This document shows, one piece after another, positions 33,070 through 49,099 of a stretch of 64,000 nucleotides of DNA. Origin of the DNA: Klebsormidium nitens (lineage: Eukaryota; Plantae; Klebsormidiophyceae); the NCBI GenBank assembly GCA_000708835.1, contig DF237147.1, positions 1 to 64,000 on the forward strand. The letters run 5' to 3'. Under the pieces are notes generated by a model. The model saw nothing but the letters and a program-made list of their open reading frames with translations. It did not search any database and was not told the origin of the DNA. Position numbers and translations under genes: made by a program. The stretch's first letter is position 1, and each line of letters starts with the position of its first letter.

Positions 33070-36000
33070 TCACTGCATGCGGCACTGGCTGGCACCGCTG
33101 CTGGGCTCCGCCAGGAAAGCGCGCCCCATGCGCAGCCGCTGCACACCACAGCCACCGACAGGGATGAGATGGAAGGGCGAAACGGAGGGCCTGAGGCATA
33201 GTAGGCGAGAATACAACCGCATAGACGTCGGTGCACCAATTTCGCGCTGTCGTATGATGGGGGCTTACCGCGGCAGTGTCGGTGGTGCGCAGCATGGCCA
33301 GCCGCTCGCGCGGACCCACCAGCAGCAAGTTGCCCACCTGCCCCATCACAGCAGGGACACGTCAGCAGAACAAAATGTGTCGCCAGACTGCCAAAATGAG
33401 CGAGCAACCAACTCTTGCTCCCATGTACCAGCACCCTTTCGCCAGCCCCGCGCACGATGGGGCTGCTCGCGGCGCGCGCTCACCCAGAAGCTGAGGCGCT
33501 CCGGCTGCGAGGTGGGCGGCATGGGCCCCGCCTGCTCCACCATCTCCGCCAAGTCGCGCGACCCGCGCCCATCTGCAGCGGCATTGAAGCAGGGGGTCAG
33601 TGCAGTACGAGAAAGTAACGACGGCACACAAGGCACAAGGCGAGGACGGTGCGGTAGCTTGCACAGTGCGGGCCACGGGGCAGGCCGTAGCAGCGGGCTC
33701 ACATGAGGCGGAGGCCTCCCGGATGCGCTGCACCCACTCGCGCGCCAGAGCTGCCGTCNNNNNNNNNNNNNNNNNNNNNNNNNNNNNNNNNNNNNNNNNN
33801 NNNNNNNNNNNNNNNNNNNNNNNNNNNNNNNNNNNNNNNNNNNNNNNNNNNNNNNNNNNNNNNNNNNNNNNNNNNNNNNNNNNNNNNNNNNNNNNNNNNN
33901 NNNNNNNNNNNNNNNNNNNNNNNNNNNNNNNNNNNNNNNNNNNNNNNNNNNNNNNNNNNNNNNNNNNNNNNNNNNNNNNNNNNNNNNNNNNNNNNNNNNN
34001 NNNNNNNNNNNNNNNNNNNNNNNNNNNNNNNNNNNNNNNNNNNNNNNNNNNNNNNNNNNNNNNNNNNNNNNNNNNNNNNNNNNNNNNNNNNNNNNNNNNN
34101 NNNNNNNNNNNNNNNNNNNNNNNNNNNNNNNNNNNNNNNNNNNNNNNNNNNNNNNNNNNNNNNNNNNNNNNNNNNNNNNNNNNNNNNNNNNNNNNNNNNN
34201 NNNNNNNNNNNNNNNNNNNNNNNNNNNNNNNNNNNNNNNNNNNNNNNNNNNNNNNNNNNNNNNNNNNNNNNNNNNNNNNNNNNNNNNNNNNNNNNNNNNN
34301 NNNNNNNNNNNNNNNNNNNNNNNNNNNNNNNNNNNNNNNNNNNNNNNNNNNNNNNNNNNNNNNNNNNNNNNNNNNNNNNNNNNNNNNNNNNNNNNNNNNN
34401 NNNNNNNNNNNNNNNNNNNNNNNNNNNNNNNNNNNNNNNNNNNNNNNNNNNNNNNNNNNNNNNNNNNNNNCGCTGCACCCACTCGCGCGCCAGAGCTGCC
34501 GTCTCCTCGGCAGCCGCCGCAACCTGCAGCAGGCAAGCAGGCGCGGTCAGCCGCAACCGCGGAGCCTTCAGCAGGCAGGGAAAGAGGAGGGGGAGCGGGA
34601 GCAGCAAGAGAGGGCGCAACCGGGCTGGCCGCACAAGGAGCGGGGGGCTGACCTCGGCCTGCTTGCCCTCGTCGACCGTGTCCTCCACGAATGCGACTTT
34701 CCCAACGCGGTACCCTGCGCACCAGCACACCGCAGTCAAACATACAGCCCGCATTCCGTCGGCCAGTCCGCTTGGCCAAACAAGAGGAAACAGGAACATG
34801 GCGAATAGGGTTGTGTGCTTAACAGCACCGGACTGGCTGGATGCAACGAATGTGTGAGGATGAAGATGACACATGCATTGCAACTGCAAAGTGCATCGTT
34901 GCGCAGACCTCAAGACAACGACTGCGTTAAGTCTGAACCCGACACTGTTGTATCTTGATTCTTTGCAAGGGAGCAACTGAGGAGGACTTCTCCTGTACAC
35001 CGTCGGTACTGACCGTCCTGCTCCCAGTCTTCGATGATCTTGACGCGCTGCCGCCCCTCCACCTGCACGCACCACTCGCATCGTCAGTCCGCGGCTCACA
35101 AGTTGACCAGGCGTGTCTCCAAGAGGGCCCCCAGTCGCTGCCCTCCGCTCTCCAGCACTGGCTGCGCTGTGTGCGTTACTTCGACCCGATAGTGCCTACC
35201 TTTATCAGAGGCCAGAATTAGACGTGGGTAGTGGTGCGGCTCACCTCGAGATAGAAGCGGCCGTCGGGCATGGGCTGGCACCTGCACCACCCACTCACAC
35301 GGTGAGGTGAGCAAAGGGACTGGCCGAGTCGGAACACAACGGCAGAGCGAGGACAGGCAGCGGCAAAGCGGCAGAGGCTCCATGGGGACAAGAAGCTGTG
35401 CGGAGGGGCTTCTGGCGCTCACTCGGTGATTTCGACCTGGCAGCCCATGTCCGCCACGTTGCGCGTCCGGGCATCGTACCCCAACTGCACCCACAGACAC
35501 GCTGGTCAGACTCGCACGCTGCTGAGCGCTCCTACCCCAAGTGCCGGACCGGCCAAAAGCAGGCCGCCTTCGCAGCAGCGGCCAACTCCCAGGCGAGGAC
35601 TGGGCGGGCGTGGCAGGCGCGGAGGTGCGGGCGGCTCACCATGCCGAACATCCTGTTGCCCTCCATGACGCGGCGGGTCATGAGGCGGTAGCGCGGCTCG
35701 AAGATGTTGAGCGCCATCTTCTTGCCGGGGAGCACCACGTCCATCACAAATAGCGGCAAGATCTGCACGCGGGCTCACAGATTGTCAAGCACAACGCCAG
35801 ACCATAGCTCGCCTCACTGCTCGGCGAAACTGCAGGCCTCGTATCAAGATTCTTCATGGGCAGCCTCTAGAAGAAAGGAAGGGGAGTTCCTCAAGTAAGA
35901 ACACAAACAACCAAAACAATCCGGTCGGGCCGACTGTCGAACAGGTACAACGCTGAGCGCAGAAGCGGGCGTCACCTCTGGGGTGGCGGGCTGAGTGATG

Positions 36001-39000
36001 GCCTCCATCTCGGCACGGCGCTCGGCGTACTCGGCCTTGAAGTTCTTCTCAATGACGTTCTTGAGGGTGATGCTGCGCAAGGGGCGAATAGATATGTGTC
36101 AGCGTCGGGTAACCGTAGACGGGACAGGGACGGTCCCAACCTGCCCGGCAGGGCGACTCGGGGGGGAGCCAGGAGGAGGCCTGGACGCAGAGACACGGCG
36201 TAGGTAAAGAATAGAGGCGGCTCCGACAAAAAGGGTGGTCCTCACCTCACGGGATGACTGCGCGGGGTCAAGAAGAGCACCGTGCGACACATGGGGCAGC
36301 GGTTCAGGCCTGCAGCAACCAACGGGCAGCGTGGCGTGAGGCGGTGCGCCAGACGAGGTGGAGCGCTAGGCAGCAGAGCAAGAGGACTCAGCACTAGCGC
36401 TCAACTCCCTTGACCAATCTCCATAACCAATTAATGAACCCCGCAAGCTCCACATGCTGCTGAAGAGCTTATCGGAAACTCAAACCTGTTCAGGCACTTG
36501 AGGCAACTGCCAACGTCAGCAATTAAAGTTGGACCCAGCCGTCCTCTCTGAGCGGACTCGCATCCTTACCGTGGTCCATGGTGCGGGCCAGGCAGTCCTT
36601 GCAAAACGTGTGCCTGGAGAGAGGAACGGTATCAGACAACCAACAGCTGTTAAGCACAACCGCAGCGGTGAGACAAGGGACGCACACAGAGCGGGAAGCT
36701 CCCCAAACAGCACCAGGAATCAAGCAACGACAATCGAGCGGGGACAATAAGACCCCCTGGCGGCCACACGCAGCAGCTGCCCGTCCCTGGATGCCTCACC
36801 CGCAGGACGTTGTGCATGGCTCGTACCTGCAGCCACACACACAGGACAAAGAGAGACTCAGCCCACGAAAGGGGGAGGCCACCTCCTGGACGCCCCTCGG
36901 CAAGAAGTCGCCAATTTTCATTCATGCTTGTCTGCGAGGCATGCTGCAATTGCTGGATCAGGCGCAGGCGGGCGGGGCGGCTCACAGCAGCTTGAGGCAG
37001 AGCGTGCAGTCGAGGTCGTCGCTGTGGGGGATGGCCTGCCGCCGCCGCTTGGCCCCTGGCTCCACCTCCTTGCCCCGCGCGGCCGCGCGCTCGTCCAGCG
37101 CGCGCAGCTCCGCCAGGCCACGCCGCAGCAAAGGACTGCAGAGAGGCGGAAAGGGGAGGGGGCGCAGAGCGTGAGGGAGCATGAGCAGGAAGCAGGCAAG
37201 GCAGGGATGGATGCGCAATGGGCAAGGCACGGCACAGAGTCAAAGAAAGGTTCGTTGTGGGGAAAGGAAAAGGACAGGACTTCATTTTGAATCTGCTTGT
37301 ATGTTCTTAATGTCCAAGAAATTTAAGAAAGCAGAAATTCATACGAACGTCTATCAAGACAATAGGGCTTTCTCCAAAACAAAAAGGGCCATGCACTAAA
37401 AATTTGAGTGTTTGCCTTCAATGATTGAAACCAGTGGCAAAAGGCCCTGGCTCCCAAGTTGATGGAATTCGGATGAGGAAGCCAGGGAGCGGCAAGCCTT
37501 CTGCCAATAAGCAGTGGGCACTGTTTGCTAAGTCCTTACCTGGAGGGATCCAGGTGAAGGCCGTTCAAATACGCCTCCTCCGCTGCGTCATACTGCTCCA
37601 GCTGCAGGGGGCAGCGGGGCATTTGGCTTCTTCAGTCACGCTACTTGATTTGAGTGCAAGCTCAGACGTGCAAAACTGCCGCAAAGTGGACCTTGCCAGA
37701 AGAGTCCACCCATACAGGAACCACAACAAGTGGCGGCCTCAGGGCTGCCCACCCAGCGGGGCTGTCCCGGAGGGAGAGGGAGCGGTTGCCCCTACCAGGA
37801 AGCAGGCGTCTGCGCGGCAGGCAAAAGCGACAGGAGAGTCCGCCTGCAACTCGATGGCGCGGTCGGCGTCCTTGAGCGCCAGCTGCAGTGCCGACAGGCA
37901 GGCACACCATGAGGAATGGGCAGGGCACCCAGGCAATGCTCCCAGGGCAGCGCAACACAAAACCACAGCAGGGGGCAAAGCGGCTGAGCCGAGGGCATGC
38001 ACAAAGTGGCTGCCCTTGTGGCAACTGCACAAGTTGAGATAGTAGGGCGCCAGACCAGCCCTCTTGGCCCAACTAACACGTAGGCAAGTGGTGCATCAGC
38101 AAACGGGCTTGCCTGCGCCAGGGACAGCGGGTCTAGCCCGTACAGTGCCCGGCTCTCGGACTGGGCTGCCGGGATCACTCGCAGCTGGCGGCTGAGCCTG
38201 CACACGCACACACAAGGACCAGTCAGACCCAGCACAAAAGCCCCGATTTCGAGGGGCCATCACACAGTCAAGAGGCGATGTTGACCGGTATATAAAGAAA
38301 GCAGTACTTGATGGTTGTGGCCTGACTGCAAGTTGGCCACATTAGGCGTCGTAACCAGCAGGAGGGGCTTACCGTGCAAACGCGGCAGAGCGGTTTTGCA
38401 GTACCCCATGGGCTTGCTTGGGCCGCAAGCGCAGGGCTAGTGTGTACTCATCGATCGCCTGCACCCAAGAAGGCAGCGTCAGCCAGGGGAGCGGGCAATC
38501 TCAGCCTACGTGGCAAAAGTGCGGGGCGCCGGATGCTCAAGAGCAGGGCCATCAGGCTTGGCGACGCGGCGCCGCTGCAGGCAGGCTCACCTGCTCCGTC
38601 TTGCCTGCCTCAAGGTGCGCATTCCCTTGCTGCCAGGCTGCAGTGAAGTCGGCGACGGCGGCATCCTCCCCCTCCTGCGCCAGGGCAAGGACAGTTACAC
38701 TCAGCGACAGGGCACTGCCAGGGAAGAACACCAGGGGGGAGGTACCAAGCATGGGGGAGGAGCCGTACAGTTGGGCACAAGGGGCACCTCGGTCAGTGTG
38801 CGCAGCAACAGCCGAATGCAGGTACAAGCAGGCATAATGCACTGGAGCTATTCCACACAAGCAACATCATGTCACAACATTATTTTCAGCAGCGCCTCGC
38901 AGAGCCCACCTCCCCTCCACGTTGCGGCGGGTAGCATACGGGAAATGCCGTCTGAGGCCCATCCTCCACCGCACCCCCAGAAGCAACGCTGAGGGGCCCG

Positions 39001-39044
39001 GGCCAAGCGGAACCCACACAATCCTCAGACTCCAGGGAACCCAT
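33070..39044 (-). CDS. LONRF: TPR-RING(C3HC4)-Lon N-terminal domain protein (LONRF-type E3 ligase), 20 exons
   Basis: TPR (AIDEYTLALRLRP..VLQNRSAAFAR; LALKDADRAIEL), RING ([25 protein letters not shown]...CPMCR) and LonN (LPLFVMDVVLPGKKMALNIFEPRYRLMTRR; PDGRFYLEVEGRQR). Exons join in phase if one GC-AG intron is used and the N gap is collapsed. Start codon uncertain. Confidence 0.9.
33759..34470. other. Assembly gap (712 N), probably spurious
   Basis: Identical 33-mer CGCTGCACCCACTCGCGCGCCAGAGCTGCCGTC on both sides (33726-33758 and 34471-34503). Confidence 0.9.
37883..38112 (-). other. GC-AG intron in LONRF
   Basis: Donor CAG|GCAAGC joins LDPLSLAQ to LALKDADRAI in frame. Confidence 0.8.
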
Positions 39045-40049
39045 CTCGCACGGATTCTCGTCTTCCTCACTTCCGAGCTGATCGAAGGCACGACAACTCA
39101 CGGCCACCTCATGGTGAAACGCTCAGGCTCCATGCTGCCGCCGGCGCAAGATCTATCGAGAGCAAACCCACAATGAGCGAAGTTTTGGTACCTGATATGA
39201 CATCATCGTGAAAGCTCTTGGAACAGCCCGCCCCCCATCGTCAAGACGTCATTGAAGACGTGTTTTGCGGGGGGACCAGTCACCAATCGCGTTTCGAGGG
39301 CGTCAGGTCGAAATCAGGCCGGTAATGGATCCTGGTGGCGGAAACAGTTGGCTTAGCTCAAACTAGGTTCGGAGAAGAATGCCTTACATCAATCTTCCTT
39401 GCACCAGGGATTGCTCGACACTTGGCGGACTCTCCAGGGGTCAAATCTTCGGTGAAGGCCTCTCATTCGCCGGAGCCAAGCTGGTCAGGTGGTGAGTGAG
39501 TTCCTCGATGAGACAAAGATGGAGGATGCAGCCGGGGAAATCGACGCTCGAGCCTCTTTCCTTGGATCCTCGAGGCCAACCGGGGCTTCTATATCTCTGT
39601 GGCAGCCGGCTGACACTTCCGGGAAGCCGTGATTTCTTGTCCTCAAGGCTCACAGCAATATCAACCGGGCACGAACCGAAGTCACCGAGGGCGCCCAGTA
39701 CTCCTGCCTCGAGATCCTTGTCGAAGGCTGGCGGTCACGCGTGCACTTGGCAAAACATTCACCGGAAGAGGATCGAAACATTCTGCAGCGAGCTCGCCAC
39801 GACGCCAGCCTGCAACAGTCTGAGTCTGCCAATGCTGGCCAGCGTGAACTCAGAACAGAATTTCGAAGGAGGTGCATGGCGGCGGAAAGGGAAGGCCAGA
39901 GCTACAGCGAGTGCTGAACAGACCGGCGCCCTCCGTGTGGTGGAGACGAGGTGATTGTAGGGCGGCGAGGATCCTGATACAATTCAAGGTTGCCAGATTG
40001 CCGAGATTGCTCAAGCGGAGCTGCCTTGGAACGAGCAGTGTTTTCCGCT

Positions 40050-42228
40050 ATGACGTCGTTGTCTGCGCACCTTCCCAAGGCGTCTGCAGGTGTGACTGCA
40101 TTGAAGAACGCTTCTTCTGGAAGTAGTTTCGTCAAGACAGACGATGTTGCACTATTGAAAGCGCTCGGACCGTTGCGAGGGCACCGCTGGCAGCAGGCGC
40201 GCCCGCCCCCTGTTGCTCAAGCTGCCCTAGCCCCTCAGAGCATGCCCAACTTCTCCCTTCACAATGTCCGCTTGATCGGCGAGGCGTGTGGAGAGACGCC
40301 CAAGTTTCGCCAGATCCGCATGTCATCTGCCTTGCAATTGCCCCCGGCCATCAGCACTGCCATCTGTGAGTCAGTGCCAGGCGCAGGGGCCGGTGTGCCT
40401 GAACGGTGGGGAGTGCCTGGCTGTGCAGCACCGCTTGCGGAGCAGAAGGCGGCCGTGGTTAAGGTGGTTGGAGTGGGATATGGCGGGAGCAAGGCCATCC
40501 AAGCCATGCTGCAGCAGCCAGGCCTTGAGGCCGCAGAGTTCTTTCTGGTGGCAGCAGACTCAGAGTCCACCCTAGACACCGATACCCTGCTGCGAGAGGA
40601 GAACCAGATCATTGTAGGACTCGACAAATTGATGGGTGGCCAGCTCAAGTCACAGGCGGAATTGGAGGACGACCTTGAATCACGTCTGGAAGGGGCAGAT
40701 CTTGTTGTGGTTGTGGCAGGTGAGCGTTATTTCAAAGTGCACAGTGACTGTGGTACTGGTTGGATCTAGACCCTCTGATTGCAAGTTGCGCTGCTGCTCT
40801 TGAGGGGACATGAGTATGAATCTTTCCCCACGATGTCTGACTGTTCCTAACATGCAATTGTGTTTGCCAGGCATGGGTGGGAACACCGGCAGCATCCCGC
40901 CAGTTGTTGCGAAAGTAGCCAGGCGGGTTGGCGCATTGACAGTGGGTCTGGTCACGAAACCATTTGCATTTGAAGGTGAGTGTGGCATTCTCATACAGCT
41001 TGCTTCTGGCCAGATTGTGTATTGTGTGTTGATGCTACAGCCTTGATGTTGGGAAACCATGCACTTCAGTCCAGATTCTGGTACATGGTTAGAGCCCATG
41101 GTCTGACCTGGTTGTTTTTCTGTTGTGTGGCGCAGGCCCCCGGCGCGCTTCCCTAGCTGAGAAGCACGTTGCAATGATGAAGAAGCGTACGGACACGCTG
41201 GTGGTCGTTCCTTGCGACCAGCTGTTAGAGGGCAAGGACTCCGAGTTTGGGGTGCGGGATGCGTTCAAGCTGGTGGATGCGCAGCTGAGGGACGCGGTCA
41301 AGGGCCTTGCCGACATGCTCATTGTGAGGCACAGCAGGGCCCCGGAAAGCTTTGTGCCTCCTCGATTCGGAATTTAAGCACTTGCGCGACTACTGTCAAA
41401 TGTTTGATCCGTGGTCAATGCAAACCCTTATCTAAGTAGCTCACCACCAATGTCTGAACCACGCACTGGCGTACCTCTGAAGCATGCCCAGATGCATTGT
41501 TTGCTCGCGAATATGTTGTTGTTAAGCCGACTCCCTTCTGTGCAGGGTTCTGGCCTGGTGAGCCCCAACCAGGTGGACGTGCAAAGTTTGCTCACGGATG
41601 CGGGGATGGCCCATCTAGGGGTGGGGTGTGCCTCAGGTGGGCATTAATTTCCAGCCTGCATTGACTGCAGCAGGGGGATCAATAGACGCCAGGGCATTCC
41701 TCTCTCCTTCTGGTAGTGCTCCAGGGCCCAGACATATGGAGTGTGTTCTGGATTACAGACTGCGGCATTTAATTTAAGCTGACTGTTAGATCTGTGATGT
41801 TGGTCGTCTGGTTGTCGAATCTGGAGTTCTGCACAGACTTACCTACTTTCTTGTGCTTTTGTGCAGGTCCAGAGCGCGCGTCTGAAGCTGCACATGCTGC
41901 CGTGGCATCTCCTGCTTTGCAGAGAAGTATGGAAACAGCGCAGGGAGTCATGTACAGCATAACAGGAGACGCAAGTCTCCAATTGTATGAAATCGCAGAA
42001 ATTTCAGAGATCATTCATAGTCACGTGGGGGGTTTTGCCCGTGCTAATGTCCTGTTCGCAGCATCAGCAGATGCAAGCATGGCAGGGAGGGTACTTGTTT
42101 CGGTGATCGCAGCAGGCTTGCCCGAACCAAGAATTGTGCCGGTAAATCTGAAGCAGCAAACGGGGGCCAGGTCGCAAGGTGCAAGGTTGTCAAAGCGGAG
42201 TTCAAGTATCCTTTGGAGCAGTCGGTAG
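40050..42228 (+). CDS. Divergent FtsZ homologue with long N-terminal extension (probable plastid transit peptide), 5 exons, 471 aa
   Basis: Exons 40050-40719, 40871-40975, 41136-41323, 41546-41636, 41867-42228 in phase (1416 nt). FtsZ scaffold is colinear: [80 protein letters not shown]. Nucleotide motifs are altered (see findings). Confidence 0.9.
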
Positions 42229-44523
42229 CATTGGCTCATGCTGGTGAGGTTGCACAAACTGTAAAGCTAGCTCGCACGCGCTCGCATAGGTCGGAAGTTT
42301 TGTACTAAACCTGTGTACAATACAACGTTTTTGACAGTTTGACCCGAGTTCAACAAGAGTTTCTTGGTTACCAAGCTCAGTGTGATCATGCAGAGTTGGC
42401 AGCAATATGTTCATGTTGTCGATTGCTTGGGTCGCTGTTACTACGGTGTAAGTCTGCTCATCTATTGGTGATCAAGCAATGACTTGCAGCTTTCATGCAT
42501 ATTTCGACAGTAACATATGCTCCAGTATGCTCCATGGATGCATTCTTTAGTATCTACTCAATTGAGTGCTGGCATTAAATTGCACCGACCATGCAACGAA
42601 GTCGATTGTGTACGCTTGCGATGCTTCGATCATCTTGAGCACTGTCTTCAGCGGAGCCGCAATTTTTGCAACTTCCATACCCTATTAGTCACGTCCAGTT
42701 TAAGAAGTGCGAATGTCCACGGCTACATCCTTTAAGGAGTGAATCTTGCTCTTCTAATTTGAATATAGCGTAAGCTGATATAGCGAAGTGATACGTAAGC
42801 AAGGTGACTGCGATGGTACAGCTCTTTTCAAGCAACCTGCATGCCGGGTTTTAGGTAGAGGGCCGGAAGTTACTTCTTTCCTACATAATGTCGCAGGCTC
42901 AACTATTCTACTCATCTAACTTTTAAAGCTTCCCTCTCTAATACAACTCGGCAGGCTGCTCGCAAAAAACTGTAACTTCTCCTTTATGAACGCCCTTAGC
43001 CACGCAGGATAGTTTGTTGACTCCTACGTTCAGCTTTCTACAGTTGCAAGTCACTTTTTCCAAAGATACTTAAGTAAGTGACTCGTGGTATGAGTAAGTG
43101 ATTCATGGTATACGAGGATCTCTCATGTCTCTTGGCGCAAGTCGCACATCTGCAACTAGGATCCGACTAAGTGTCGGACGTGATTGGACGTTAGGTAACC
43201 TGCTATAGCTTGTTCGAACTAATCGCAAATGTGCAACTTATGCCGTGCCTTGGTGCTGATTCCTCAAGTGACGTTCTCTTTTTCAACGCCGTAGAAGCGA
43301 CCATGGCACATATACATATGGGCATACATCTTTCACAATATTTGAACTTCGACGTGCCAGCTAGGCTGGCTATTGAACTTATTGACCGAAGCTGCATGGG
43401 CGTGCTGGTTGATTCAATCCAAAATTAATTAGCCTAATATGTTCATTGAGCTTCATTGAATATCTCAAAGAATCGTGCTATATTGAAACTTCTAGTTATG
43501 ATATTTGAGAATACCGCTTGCTGGCAGGTTGTTCAATGGCACTAGATTGGCAACTTCTCTGTTGGATGTAAACTGCAGTTTAATTGAAATGCATATAAAG
43601 GTCATGGGTGTCGATGCAAGAAGGTTCCCACAGTGCATGCCTATCATCGACTTATGAGCCTGTGACTGCGCCAGAACAAAGCGGGTTGGCATACCATGGA
43701 GACAGAGCAGGAGATGTTAATTTATGACACATGATCCATAACAAACCTGAGAGCTCGGAAAGCTATGTGTATATAGCTTGAATTTAGGTAGCGAAGCAAC
43801 TTCAGTCGTAGTGCACGCAGCAGCTTCACCGCAAAGAAACTCTGCATATTGTGGGTTCGTTCGAATAATCGACGCACGCAACTGATCGTGTAAACACTAT
43901 GCGGCCAATAAAGTGCACTCAAGCCAGTGAGCTGTCACTTGACAGAAAGTTTCTAGCCCTCAGCATGTGCATGCGTCAGTACTGTCATTGACATATTGAC
44001 GGAGGTAACCGAGGAAACAAAAGTAGAATCTACCACCACTTACACAACCTGTTTTGCTGATCTTCAATCGCTTTGAACACGTGAGTTAGTGACCGACTTT
44101 CTACACTAAACAAAAGTTCGTCACCTACATCCTCTCGCGCTATGTACGTTGCGGTCCAGCTGCCGGTCTAACGCTCCTAATTCGCCCAAACGTTTGCTTC
44201 TCATGGGAGCAAATCTATTCTCCGCGAATACGAACGCTGACAACCCGTGAAGAGCGAAGACCAACGGACAACCCGTGAAAAGCTAACGCAAGCGAAAAGT
44301 CAACAGGTATTTTACTTGGTGAAGGAAAGCCTGCTCCACTCAAACTCGCAAAACCGGCTGCAGACTGGACTGATCCTGACAACGAAGTTTGACGCACCTC
44401 TCGCAATAAGGCCTCATTGTGGACATCCCCTAGCATGCGGTCTTGTGAGTTTTTCACAACCTTTCCTGCAGACTTGCGAAGCAGGGCGCTCCCGTGGACA
44501 TCCGGGAGTAGGGAGCTCGAGCC

Positions 44524-47500
44524 TCACACCCACGCTGGGTTCTTGAGGGCCGTGACCACAGCCTTAACCTGCGCGGCAGTAACGAAGACGGCAAGAACCC
44601 AGTCAAGACGTGGTCACTGCCTGAGCCTCAGGGGGCGGCTGCTTAACGCATCAAAAGTCCTTACTGCGCTGGCGTCGCTTGCTCACTTGGACAACGTCTC
44701 TGGGCGCCGGACGTGGCATGCGGTCCACAATGTGCACTTGCGCAGCTCGAGTACGCGAGCTTACCTGCGTGAAGTTCTCGAGTGCGTACTCGCCGTGCTC
44801 CCGCCCAATCCCGCTCATCTTGTAGCCACCTGCGCAGGGCAAGGGAGTGGCGTGAGACGGTGTACTGAACCAGGATTTGCAACAAACACGCCCTGAATTT
44901 CAGCTCAGCGCATGGTGCGTTTGGTCGCTGCAATGCGGCCTCCAAGCGGGGTGGCTCACCAAAGGGGATGGAGGCATCGAAGTTGTCAAATGTGTTGATC
45001 CACACGGTGCCCACGCGCAGCGCGCGCGAGAGGTAGTGCGCCGTGTCCAGGTTCTTGGTGAAGATGCCCGCCGCCAGGCCGTAGCAGCTGCGGTTCGCGC
45101 GCTCCACCACCTGCACGCCAAGCCCGCCACGAGTCAGAGCGAGCAGCGCCCCGCAGCAGGAAGGTGCCGGCTCCCCTTCCACACAGATGGATCATCGAGA
45201 GTCAAGGCGGATGCTTTGAAAGTCAGGGTAGCCTATTGGAGTCGTGGTGACGTGGGGTCCTGGAAACGACGATTACCAGGCTTCAGGCTAAGCGAACAAG
45301 AATCTTCAATCTGCCGACTGGGAGACAACGAGCAGTCTCAATAGACTGAAAGCCAGAAGCATGACCCAGACTCTTCGACAGCACAGGACAGCATAGCGGG
45401 CCTAGATGTTGGGCGTGCTCACCTCTTCCAGCGTCTTGAACTTGAAGGCGCACATGACGGGCCCGAAGATCTCCTCCTTAGCGATGCTCATGTCGTCCGC
45501 GACGCCTGCCCACACAGCATGGACGAGCGGGTCAGAAGAGGAGCACACGCACCACGGGCACCACAGCGTAAATACAGCTCTGCCAAAACTTCTGAGGAGC
45601 AGATTCAGATGAGAGACATCTCCTTGCCACACGCAGCGTGCTGGAGGGGCCCTCGCCGGGTCCTCCCGTTTTCTGTCAGCTTGCGGTCGCTGTGGTGGCT
45701 GACCCGTGAAGATGGTGGGCTCGATGTAGAAGCCCTTGTCGCCGACGCGCTTGCCGCCGGTGGCGAGCTTGGCGCCCTCCTTCTGGCCGGCCGCGATGTA
45801 GCCCAGGATCTTGGTCATCTGCTCGCCGTCCACCTGCGGGCCCTGCTCGCTCGCCGCCTCGAACGGATCCCCAACCTTGCGCCGCTGCGCGCGCGCCACC
45901 GCCTTCTCCACGTACTGGTCGTAGATGCTCTCGTGCACGAACGTGCGCGACCCCGCGCAGCAGCACTGCCCCTGCACCCACCGCAGCATGCGAAGGTCGG
46001 CCCACGACGCACGGCACGTGAACCTCACCTCGAGATGTCAACCGAGATTTGAGTATAAGCAAGAAATACACCAAGAAGTAAAGAAGCGGCAGACAAACGA
46101 GCAACCTGCAAAAGCTTTTGTCGAAAACGGAATGCAAATTGATTGCTTGTAACCGAATATGCCCGGTTTCCGTGCAAAAATTTCTGACACACAGGTAACT
46201 CTTCGTCTTGTCAGGGCGCGGCTGGCTGCGGGCTTGCCTGGTTGAAGAAAAGCGCAAAGTGCGACAGCTCGACTGCCTCGTCCAGGTCCGCATCCTCGCA
46301 CACAATGAACGGTGACTTGCCGCCCAGCTCCAACGTCACGCGCTGCATGCACAGGCCGCACAGCATCAGGAGCAAGGCCGAGACCCACCCCCGCACACAA
46401 CAACGACGAACCAAGGGTCGTAGGCCCTTGTCAAGCACAGACACCAAAGAAGAGATCGAAAAACCTAGTGGACAGGCTTTGGCAGCGCCATCCCGTGAGC
46501 TATGACCAAACCTGCGTCCTTAGACTCCTTCTGCCAAAATTGCTTACGAGCCTTGAAGGAGATAGGCTCGAGATCTCCCGGGCCTCTTCGTGCGCACCTT
46601 GAGGTTGGTCTCCCCGGCCATGGTCATGATTTTCTGGCCGACTTCCGTGGACCCAGTGAACGCAACCTGCACAGGCAGCGATTGGCCATGTGAACCTTCT
46701 TCAGAGTGAGCTAACAAGATTCTGTGCAAAAAGGACGACATGGGCTTAACCACAAACATGGAATGTATAACGTTGCAAATGACACTTGACTACCAATAAC
46801 TGCACCTGAAAGTGAGCCCCTCCAACTGATGCAATCTCGACAAGCGGCGGCCCTCACCTTGTCCACGTCCAGGTGGCGTGCCAACGCGGCACCCGCAGTC
46901 GGCCCATAGCCGGAGAGGATGTTCAGCACGCCGGGAGGGACGCCAGCCTGCAACACAAGACGCGAGGAACCTGTCATCAGGCCACAGCGCCGAGGAACAC
47001 CTCAAATATACAAGCAGAGGATTCTTCAGTCTGCAACAGGTGGGGCGAAATTAAGGAGTGGGGGTGAGGCTCACCTCCAGCGCCAGCTGTCCTACATAGA
47101 GTGCGGTGAGCGGGGTTTGCTCTGCGCTCTTGAGTACGATGGTGCAGCCGCATGCCAGCGCCGGGGCCACCTTCCAAGCAAACATGGCCAGCGGGACTGC
47201 AGCCAGGAGCAAGGGCCAAGTATTCTACAAGGCGGGAAGGTGACCGTGTGGGAGCTGAAAAGGACAGCCATCACTGCGGACTATGTGTCCAGAGCCTGTG
47301 CTTCAGTGCATGCAAGCCGGCAATTACATCTTTGCAGCGCACCGTTAAGCAAGAGAATCAGACATGTGTCTGGAACTGGCCAAGTACATGAGTTGCGCCA
47401 CCAAGCAGACCAAGAAGGCGAAGGTTCTCAGACTGCTTGTACTCACAATTCCAGGGGATGATGGCGCCTACAACCCCGATGGGCTCGTGTAGAGTGTAGG

Positions 47501-49099
47501 CCAGGAAGGGGCCGTCCGCCTGAACAAAAAGAAGGAATAAGCAGGCGTGACCCCTGGCGCACCCACACAGAGACCCTCAGCAAGGACTTCACTGACCAGC
47601 CTCGCCTCACAAGCAGGAGAACCATGGGCGAGATAGTCACCCCAATAGACCGCACCCATCATATACACTTGCTTGCCAGGGCAACAGAGCTTGTGACTCT
47701 GGAAAGAGCGAATCAAGTTCCGTCCACTAAGTGTCAAGAACCTGAAAGAGGCAATTACAAATACTGTGGATGAACCTGGTCACTCAGCGTTACTATATAA
47801 TGAAAATCAACAAAATTTCACCTGTATCGTCTTGCCCTGGATTTTGTCAGCCCATCCTGCACAAAAGAACCACCAGACCCGTCAGCATTGCACAAGTGCC
47901 TCCTTTTTCCATCTCTTGGAAAGTGCAGTGCTCCAAGGTAATCAGCCATGATTGCTATAGCAGCGGAGCGCCATTCCTGGCTGCAGGCTCCACTGACCTG
48001 CGAAGTACTGGAAGTGCTTGACCACGTGCGGGACGTCCACCGCCCGCGAAATGGAGAGCGGCTTGCCATTGTCCAGTGTCTCCAGCCTGGCCAGCTCATC
48101 CACGTTCTGCTCAATCAGCTCCGCAAGCTTCCAGATGATCTTGCCGCGCTCCTGCACCCCACATCCACGCCTCAGCAAGTGGCTCTACGCGCGCAGTCAT
48201 GAGATACCAATGATGGAAGTGGTCAACAACGTTAAACATATCCCCAAATTCTGCTAACAAAGAAGCGGCCCGACCCTGCCAGGCAAGGGGCACATGATTT
48301 TGCTCACTCTGGCGGGCATCTTTGGCCAGGGCCCCTCATCGAATGCCTTGCGGGCAGCCTTGACCGCAATGTCCACATCCGCAGCGTCCGCTTCGGCCAC
48401 CTCGACAATCACCTCCTCAGACCGGGGGTCAATAGTGGGGAACTTCTTGCCTGCAACCCGAAGGAGGGGGCGTAGAGGAAAAATGATGACAAGCATTGTC
48501 GTGCGACAGCCTCCAAGATTTGCAGTCAAGTCTTACTATACTCAGATACTTTGCAGACTTTGGTGGACTGAAAATCGGAGGCGCATATTGTAAAACTTCA
48601 ACAATTCAAAATTGGGGTGTCAGGGTGTCATACCAATTGCATGCTGCAGCAATTCAGGATTATGAACCAATGAAATGTTGGACAACCAGACCAAGTCTCT
48701 GAGGCATGCAATGTCATAAAGTGCAACCACCGAGCAGATTTGCATGAAGTCTTAGCTCAGCTTATATATATGTACTTGTTGTTGGCTGGGAAGAGTGCGG
48801 GGTTGAATCGCCCAATATTGCAATAAAGTGCCCAGAAAAGTACCCCAGAACAAATCAAGAAGCCCACGACATGGCAAATAATATGGACCCTTTTGTACAG
48901 CACATTGACGAAAGCAGGCAAGCAAGGCTTTCGACCTTCTTCCATTCTGTAATGCCATACACACGCCCAGCATGCATCAAAGCATCCTTCCTGCTGCCCA
49001 TTAGGGGCGCATACCTGACACGGCGTCGACCCACTTGCCATCGATGAGCAGCTGGGTGTACTTGATCTCCGCAGGAGCTCCGTTTTGCGCGGCCACCAT
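44524..49099 (-). CDS. ALDH2: Aldehyde dehydrogenase family 2, 14 exons
   Basis: [76 protein letters not shown] (catalytic Glu), [13 protein letters not shown] (catalytic Cys), [34 protein letters not shown]. Confidence 0.97.
45972..46237 (-). other. GC-AG intron in ALDH2
   Basis: Donor CAG|GCAAGC joins LFFNQ to GQCCCAG; read-through hits an in-frame TGA after 8 codons. Confidence 0.9.

Follow-up and report, generated by a model that had tools for sequence, protein, structure and literature searches.

Gene structure and expression

We analyzed a window of 64,000 nucleotides from the alga Klebsormidium nitens (contig DF237147.1) and examined an FtsZ-family gene at positions 40050-42228 of its forward strand, the product of which is a putative pseudo-GTPase, that is, an FtsZ paralogue predicted not to hydrolyze guanosine triphosphate (GTP). 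The gene comprises five exons with 471 codons plus a stop codon and contains no internal stop codons. An earlier note on this DNA, which was based on the sequence alone, had proposed an uninterrupted five-exon open reading frame (ORF), and spliced RNA contigs bear out this model. RNA contigs from four public runs, belonging to four studies, were placed on positions 39600-43100. One contig in each of the four runs joins the exons exactly at all four predicted GT..AG introns, and these contigs extend from ~39865-39908 to 42334-42374, so that the transcript ends ~150 nucleotides past the stop codon. Word depth was 22-300 for the spliced form compared to 3-13 for contigs covering introns. The exact splicing in four runs indicates that the mRNA of this FtsZ paralogue is real and spliced as predicted. 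Absence of expression had been named in the earlier note as an observation that would speak against a functional gene; transcription and splicing were found in four studies. The gene is organized as follows.

39865-40049, forward strand: 5' leader, spanning the RNA contig starts at 39865-39908 (four runs)
40050-40719, forward strand: exon 1, with the start codon, an N-terminal extension of ~133 residues and then FtsZ elements S1 to H3, including loops T1-T3
40720-40870, forward strand: intron 1, GT..AG, phase 1, splitting the Gly codon of AG^MGG; spliced out in RNA
40871-40975, forward strand: exon 2, with the T4 tubulin-signature region and strand S5; 91-97% identical in orthologues
40976-41135, forward strand: intron 2, GT..AG, phase 1; spliced out in RNA
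41136-41323, forward strand: exon 3, with T5 (PFAFEG kept), T6 and helix H7
41324-41545, forward strand: intron 3, GT..AG, phase 0; position common to Chara CBR_g44487 and grass FtsZ2-1
41546-41636, forward strand: exon 4, with the T7 loop and helix H8
41637-41866, forward strand: intron 4, GT..AG, phase 1; position common to Chara CBR_g44487 and grass FtsZ2-1
41867-42228, forward strand: exon 5, with the FtsZ C-terminal domain, a short linker, a C-terminal peptide and the stop codon (42226-42228)
42229-42374, forward strand: 3' untranslated region; RNA contigs stop at 42334-42374 (four runs)

Each of the three phase-1 introns interrupts a Gly codon; the remaining one, intron 3, has phase 0. 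An upstream ORF of 13 codons, MAAEREGQSYSEC, lies at 39875-39916 within the RNA-covered 5' leader, upstream of the main ATG at 40050. Low-depth contigs over introns 3 and 4 (41295-41575 and 41609-41893) were present in the same runs as the spliced form; these intron-covering contigs may represent pre-mRNA, retained introns or traces of DNA.

Homology to FtsZ

Database, Pfam and structure searches were run exon by exon, and exons were joined only for alignments, column counts and trees. Exon 5 matched the Pfam family FtsZ_C (PF12327) with 56.8 bits (cut-off 27, E 2.8e-15). The match of exon 2, as a single-exon query, to the Pfam family Tubulin (PF00091) was weak (19.4 bits, cut-off 33), and exons 1 and 3 gave no match when searched singly against Pfam. 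In the search of solved structures, residues 134-223 (exon 1) matched FtsZ at E 1e-6 and exon 5 did so at E 3e-11, the two matches being colinear. Homology to FtsZ is thus far beyond chance, and the Pfam FtsZ_C and structure matches confirm the colinear FtsZ homologue proposed earlier. Based on this colinear homology, the FtsZ fold is predicted to be retained. The window protein was aligned with MAFFT to a reference set of 239 canonical cyanobacterial or plastid FtsZ proteins, and 80 of the 136 columns conserved to 95% or more in canonical FtsZ are retained in it.

Nucleotide pocket and T7 loop

Relative to the 239 canonical FtsZ proteins, the losses cluster in the nucleotide pocket and the T7 loop. 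The altered motifs are as follows, with the number of canonical sequences that carry the canonical residue given as a fraction.

40470-40496, forward strand: T1 loop, GVGYGGSKA, with G replaced by Y and N by K (each canonical residue 239/239)
40551-40559, forward strand: T2 loop, AAD in place of NTD, with N and T both replaced by A (canonical 239/239 each) and the next residue, Q, replaced by E (canonical 239/239)
40617-40640, forward strand: T3 region, GLDKLMGG, in which a nine-residue deletion takes out the GLGAGGNP gamma-phosphate loop
40871-40896, forward strand: T4 signature, GMGGNTGSI in place of GMGGGTG(S/T)GA, with the third Gly (239/239) replaced by Asn and a one-residue deletion
41210-41218, forward strand: T6 motif, PCD in place of PND, with N replaced by C (canonical N 239/239)
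41273-41281, forward strand: H7 motif, VDA in place of ADD/ADE, with loss of the guanine-recognizing second acid
41561-41578, forward strand: T7 motif, SPNQVD where canonical FtsZ has NVDFAD; of the invariant N, D, F, A and D (239/239 each) only the final Asp is retained

In the T3 region, none of the three rows of the family formed by the window protein and its two full-length orthologues (see below) has a residue in alignment columns 399-407. The tubulin signature GGGTG(S/T)G reads GGNTG-S in the window protein. At column 519 in H7, 235/239 canonical rows carry D or E, and the three family rows carry A, A and S. The T7 synergy loop NxDFxD is likewise absent from the three orthologues, which read SPNQVD, SANQMD and DANLSE. 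The ribose-binding T5 motif PFxFEG..R is retained. Every motif loss reported in the earlier note (T1, T2, T3, T4, T6 and T7, the latter with its last Asp kept) was recovered at the place given there; the loss of the H7 acid and the conserved C-terminal peptide described below are additions.

In FtsZ, the Asn of T6 and the Asp of H7 recognize guanine, T3 is the gamma-phosphate loop, and T1 and T4 bind phosphates through backbone amides. Guanine-specific binding is unlikely in the window protein because the T6 Asn, the H7 Asp, the T3 loop and the invariant Gly and Asn residues of T1 and T4 are lost. We conclude that guanine-specific nucleotide binding has very probably been lost, and the same motifs predict a loss of GTP hydrolysis. 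With the Asn and Asp of T7 replaced, the protein would not stimulate hydrolysis in the subunit below it.

N-terminal extension and C-terminal peptide

The N-terminal extension had been put at ~130 residues, in agreement with the ~133 residues found here in exon 1. Three segments were distinguished in the two ends.

40050-40244, forward strand: probable chloroplast transit peptide, residues 1-65, Ser/Thr/Ala-rich, with the first acidic residue at position 31; poorly conserved between orthologues
40245-40328, forward strand: conserved block of the N-terminal extension, PNFSLHNVR..., residues 66-93; an 11-residue part is invariant in the window, L002 and L001
42193-42225, forward strand: C-terminal peptide, the last 11 residues, with the consensus [KR]R[ST]SS[IV][LM]WS[ST]R in the window, L002 and L001

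Judging from its composition, the N terminus is probably a chloroplast transit peptide, which would place the protein in the plastid. The conserved block at residues 66-93 had no Pfam match. In the window protein, L002 and L001, the C-terminal peptide is conserved while the linker that precedes it diverges. This family-specific peptide of 11 residues forms the tail of the protein, and the FtsZ2-type core motif (D/E)(I/V)PxFL(R/K) is absent. No MORN repeat was found in the gene, as judged from Pfam searches by exon, the transcript end at ~42374 and the length of 471 residues. The proposal that the protein carries neither MORN repeats nor a DIPxFL-type core motif is consistent with the Pfam results, the transcript end and the tail sequence.

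Orthologues and selection

A word search with the exon-1 ORF, which reached proteins of up to 1.75 times the query length (453 residues for the longest ORF) and returned exon-1 fragments only, identified three fragments from related organisms with 83, 65 and 48% identity. All three contain GVGYGGSKA, so that the T1 motif is identical in four taxa. The orthologues lie on three related algal contigs (L002, L001 and P0002) and are colinear. On L002 and L001 we found the whole colinear five-exon gene, intact, with 471 and 474 codons, respectively.

The ratio of nonsynonymous to synonymous substitution rates (dN/dS) was estimated by the Nei-Gojobori method. For the window gene compared to L002 it was 0.12 over all exons (dS 0.47) and 0.03 over exons 2-4 (dS 0.59). 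Compared to L001 it was 0.18 over all exons, with dS saturated. Across the comparisons, exons 2-4 gave values of 0.03-0.06. Every family member has the same altered sequence at T1, T2, T3, T4 and T6, whereas T7 differs among members, indicating that the pocket side is strongly constrained in its new form and that the sequence of T7 is not. Strong purifying selection acts on this transcribed and spliced gene, and the pocket replacements have become fixed across the family. Neutral evolution, which the earlier note had listed among the outcomes that would speak against a functional gene, is contradicted by dN/dS values of 0.12-0.18 and by the intact orthologues.

The downstream neighbor of the FtsZ-family gene is a multi-exon aldehyde dehydrogenase gene at ~44600-48500 on the reverse strand. 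An aldehyde dehydrogenase neighbor (ORFs matching Pfam Aldedh) also follows the orthologue in L002. Elsewhere in the window, long runs of X in the ORF translations mark an assembly gap at ~33700-34500.

Search for further relatives

An exhaustive HMMER search of 1.84 billion representatives with an exon-5 profile built from three taxa returned 3745 proteins at E <=0.001, only one of which, the exon-5 ORF of L001, fell below 1e-30. The next match was a gene model from Closterium in which two canonical FtsZ units are arranged in tandem, and its score sums two matched stretches. It was followed by Chara braunii CBR_g44487 (P0006, 581 residues) with 92.6 bits; other single FtsZ matches scored 57-73 bits. 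Metagenome contigs scanned with exon-5 and N-domain alignments contained no further family members, an exact look-up of the exon-1 ORF product gave no match, and the clusters retrieved from the Protein Atlas with exon 5 were all generic FtsZ_C clusters. Our literature searches found no description of a GTPase-dead or pseudo-GTPase FtsZ paralogue in algae.

Gene models of 729-861 residues, five in number and all from Closterium (P0005 and P0405-P0408), were noted in passing. In P0005, the model examined, two FtsZ2-type units, each complete and canonical, follow one another within a single protein; the model reflects either a genuine fusion of two FtsZ copies or the merging of tandem genes.

Relationship to Chara braunii CBR_g44487 and to FtsZ3

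The Chara protein shares with the window family a degenerate T3, the loss of the catalytic Asp of T7, and the absence of MORN repeats and of the core motif. Unlike the window family, it has a near-canonical T1 (GVGGAGCN), T2 (NTD) and T4 (GGGTGG), and its T7, NVDFTAL, keeps the Asn and the first Asp and has lost the catalytic Asp. Its N-terminal extension and C terminus differ from those of the window family. The Chara gene, on contig L003 (BFEA01000591.1), spans 50 kilobases with nine annotated introns. Its model skips the exons for T5-H7 (L003 31804-43027), where there are gaps of N at 36450-39198 and 40424-40597; because the locus has these assembly gaps, the absence of the T5-H7 part is probably an assembly artefact.

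In an IQ-TREE phylogeny, the family and the Chara protein form a clade with support 97/94, and the stem of the family is 3.8 substitutions per site long. At columns conserved to 95% or more, the family and the Chara protein have 11 identical derived residues in common, which all map to the C-terminal domain and the final part of H7. The corresponding number was two for a divergent Mesostigma FtsZ and four for chlorarachniophyte FtsZ, with a maximum of five in the 239 control rows. Introns 3 (phase 0) and 4 (phase 1) of the window gene match introns of the Chara gene and of grass FtsZ2-1 in both column and phase. Four intron positions are common to the Chara gene and FtsZ2-1; between the Chara gene and an FtsZ3-like gene of Sphagnum there is one, in column 524 and phase 0. 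These shared positions point to descent from an old, intron-bearing nuclear FtsZ gene of the plastid type and not to a recent bacterial acquisition. We conclude that the family probably shares ancestry with Chara braunii CBR_g44487.

The foremost alternative, which we regard as unlikely, is that the window gene is a fast-evolving Klebsormidium FtsZ3 orthologue, the product of which is still a GTP-dependent Z-ring subunit co-assembling with FtsZ2. FtsZ3 has been reported from streptophyte algae, bryophytes and lycophytes (PMC13650779; PMC10030945). In being a third lineage of plastid FtsZ that is confined to early-diverging streptophytes, it resembles the window family. The FtsZ3-like rows of our alignment are proteins of Mesostigma, Sphagnum and Spirogloea, none of which is explicitly named FtsZ3 in the set. 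In an approximately unbiased (AU) test, a clade of the family, the Chara protein and these rows was not rejected (p 0.26, at a cost of 4.7 log-likelihood units), although the free tree places the family outside them. The window family shares VVVP and GALT with the FtsZ3-like rows, and PCD and the Ala at the position of the T2 Thr with the Mesostigma protein; the intron position in column 524 shared by the Chara and Sphagnum genes is likewise consistent with an FtsZ3 origin. However, unions with FtsZ1-like rows (p 0.47) or with FtsZ2 (p 0.46) fit at least equally well, and neither these nor a union with non-cyanobacterial FtsZ (p 0.15) was rejected. In moss, the GTPase domain of FtsZ3 is functional and its C-terminal peptide binds ARC6 (PMC13274647). 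Moss FtsZ3 also co-assembles with FtsZ2. The FtsZ3-like rows keep T4 and T7, all except Mesostigma also keep T1, and all end in VPE[FI]LRR, whereas the window protein lacks each of these. In place of an FtsZ3 tail of the type VPEFLRRR the window family has its own peptide of 11 residues, and its pocket residues, T3 and T7 are lost.

The Mesostigma viride protein in question (P0103, 643 residues), which groups with the Sphagnum and Spirogloea proteins resembling FtsZ3, is itself altered in T1 (GVGNGGCN), T2 (NAD), T3 (GKGAGGD) and T6 (PCD), with T4 and T7 intact and a VPEFLRR tail.

Proposed role

Chloroplast division is explained by the GTP-hydrolyzing proteins FtsZ1, FtsZ2 and FtsZ3 together with the regulators ARC3, the Min proteins, ARC6 and PARC6. 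Klebsormidium stands near the base of the streptophytes, and its chloroplast division is peptidoglycan-dependent. Against this background, the gene appears to encode an FtsZ-derived pseudo-GTPase with a known range of Klebsormidium-like algae and a less derived relative in Chara. We consider it likely that it is a functional, non-catalytic FtsZ paralogue.

Among the explanations considered, we favor a plastid-targeted regulator of Z-ring filaments, a model for which we regard the case as evenly balanced. Derived from an intron-bearing plastid FtsZ gene, the protein would enter the chloroplast by means of its Ser/Thr/Ala-rich N terminus acting as a transit peptide, and would dock on FtsZ1/FtsZ2 filaments through surfaces that are still conserved. 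Its T7 would be unable to activate the neighboring subunit, and its own pocket, without T3 and without the base-recognizing Asn and Asp, would offer a contact that can be neither hydrolyzed nor extended. As an outcome, filaments might be capped or stabilized instead of treadmilling. Like the C-terminal peptides of FtsZ1 and FtsZ2, its own could serve as an anchor, either to a partner or to the envelope membrane. This mode of action is deduced from established knowledge of FtsZ structure and function; the earlier note had likewise proposed that the protein could cap, poison or scaffold Z-ring filaments.

More tentatively, the family and Chara CBR_g44487 could constitute a fourth, old streptophyte lineage of FtsZ, in which hydrolysis through T3 and T7 was lost first, as in the state seen in Chara, and the whole guanine pocket was lost later in the Klebsormidiophyceae. 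Its members would be natural, substoichiometric cappers or stabilizers of filaments that tune the treadmilling of the chloroplast Z-ring, distinct from ARC3 and the Min system. We consider this extended scenario possible but rather doubtful. A natural GTPase-dead FtsZ under strong selection would represent a new class of Z-ring regulator, and the proteins would illustrate a stepwise loss of catalysis among cytoskeletal GTPases, in which Chara shows the intermediate and the window family the final state.

Four points weigh against parts of the favored explanation, including the proposed ancestry. In the tree, the family and the Chara protein meet as two long branches, which the tree tool flagged. 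When one of the two partners is left out, the remaining one attaches to the unresolved backbone, and these leave-one-out trees and the AU tests together favor no placement among FtsZ1, FtsZ2 and FtsZ3. The family was found only in four closely related genomes and Chara. Finally, T1 and T4 are strictly conserved within the family, so that the protein may retain some nucleotide binding.

A less probable possibility is recruitment to a role outside plastid division, with the protein serving as a cytosolic, mitochondrial or plastid-skeleton scaffold. Both the conserved block at residues 66-93 and the novel C-terminal peptide hint at interactions with new partners. The composition of the N terminus is, however, that of a transit peptide, and no positive evidence points to another job. 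To our knowledge, the known FtsZ paralogues of the green lineage all act in plastids.

We regard as still less probable that the protein is an ARC3-type inhibitor, or an intermediate toward ARC3, in which the MORN domain was lost or never gained. ARC3, which consists of an FtsZ-like domain and MORN repeats, inhibits FtsZ assembly (PMC8964177; PMC13650779), and the concept of an FtsZ-like inhibitor is thus the same; degenerate motifs and the lack of the FtsZ2 core motif are also common to both. Yet the window gene encodes no MORN repeats, and since its transcript ends ~150 nucleotides past the stop codon and the next gene, for aldehyde dehydrogenase, lies on the opposite strand, it has no hidden MORN exons. 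Membership in ARC3 was rejected for want of the MORN architecture. The nearest relative is the partly degenerate Chara FtsZ, which also lacks MORN repeats, and the earlier suggestion of an ARC3-like evolutionary intermediate thus found no support.

A decaying or neutral duplicate, that is, an expressed pseudogene, would fit the loss of many invariant catalytic residues, the variation of T7 among orthologues and the narrow taxonomic range, but was rejected as highly improbable on the basis of dN/dS (0.12-0.18 overall and 0.03-0.06 in the core) and of correct splicing in four studies, together with substituted motifs that are identical across taxa and a frame that is intact in three full-length orthologues, the window gene included, despite saturated dS compared to L001.

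Comparison with known FtsZ proteins and regulators

The window gene is additional to the FtsZ1 and FtsZ2 genes published for K. nitens. The supplement of An et al. (2024) gives the sequences of K. nitens FtsZ1 (GAQ85535.1) and FtsZ2, both of them canonical and both with GGGG(G/S)N, NTD and GGGTGSG (PMC11285052). FtsZ1, which is shown there in full, has GGGGGN, GLGTGG, PND, NVDFAD and the tail SSTRSKGNLW, none of which is present in the window protein. The strings GYGGSK and ILWSSR, and GGAGCN of the Chara protein, are absent from that data set. Similarities to FtsZ1 and FtsZ2 include the predicted fold, the colinearity and the two intron positions that match grass FtsZ2-1. In addition, FtsZ1 proteins of streptophyte algae end in short basic and aromatic peptides that bind membranes (PMC11285052), and the C-terminal peptide of the window protein, which is also short, basic and aromatic, resembles these tails.

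The window protein resembles ARC3 in being derived from FtsZ, in its degenerate GTP motifs and missing FtsZ2 core motif, and in its presumed role as a regulator and not a polymer. Compared by the described architecture of ARC3, it differs in lacking the middle domain and the MORN repeats, and it is still recognizable as FtsZ, as reflected in the 80 of 136 conserved columns.

A functional parallel may be found in engineered mutants of bacterial FtsZ. In capper and T7 (D212-type) mutants, one polymer interface is disabled, or T7 cannot trigger hydrolysis. By analogy, the window protein could have one competent and one disabled interface, or a T7 that is unable to trigger hydrolysis. Those mutants are laboratory point mutants, whereas the window gene is a natural paralogue under purifying selection with many substitutions on both faces. 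If the proposed role is correct, it would be a naturally occurring equivalent of the capper and T7 mutants with which filament polarity and treadmilling are studied.

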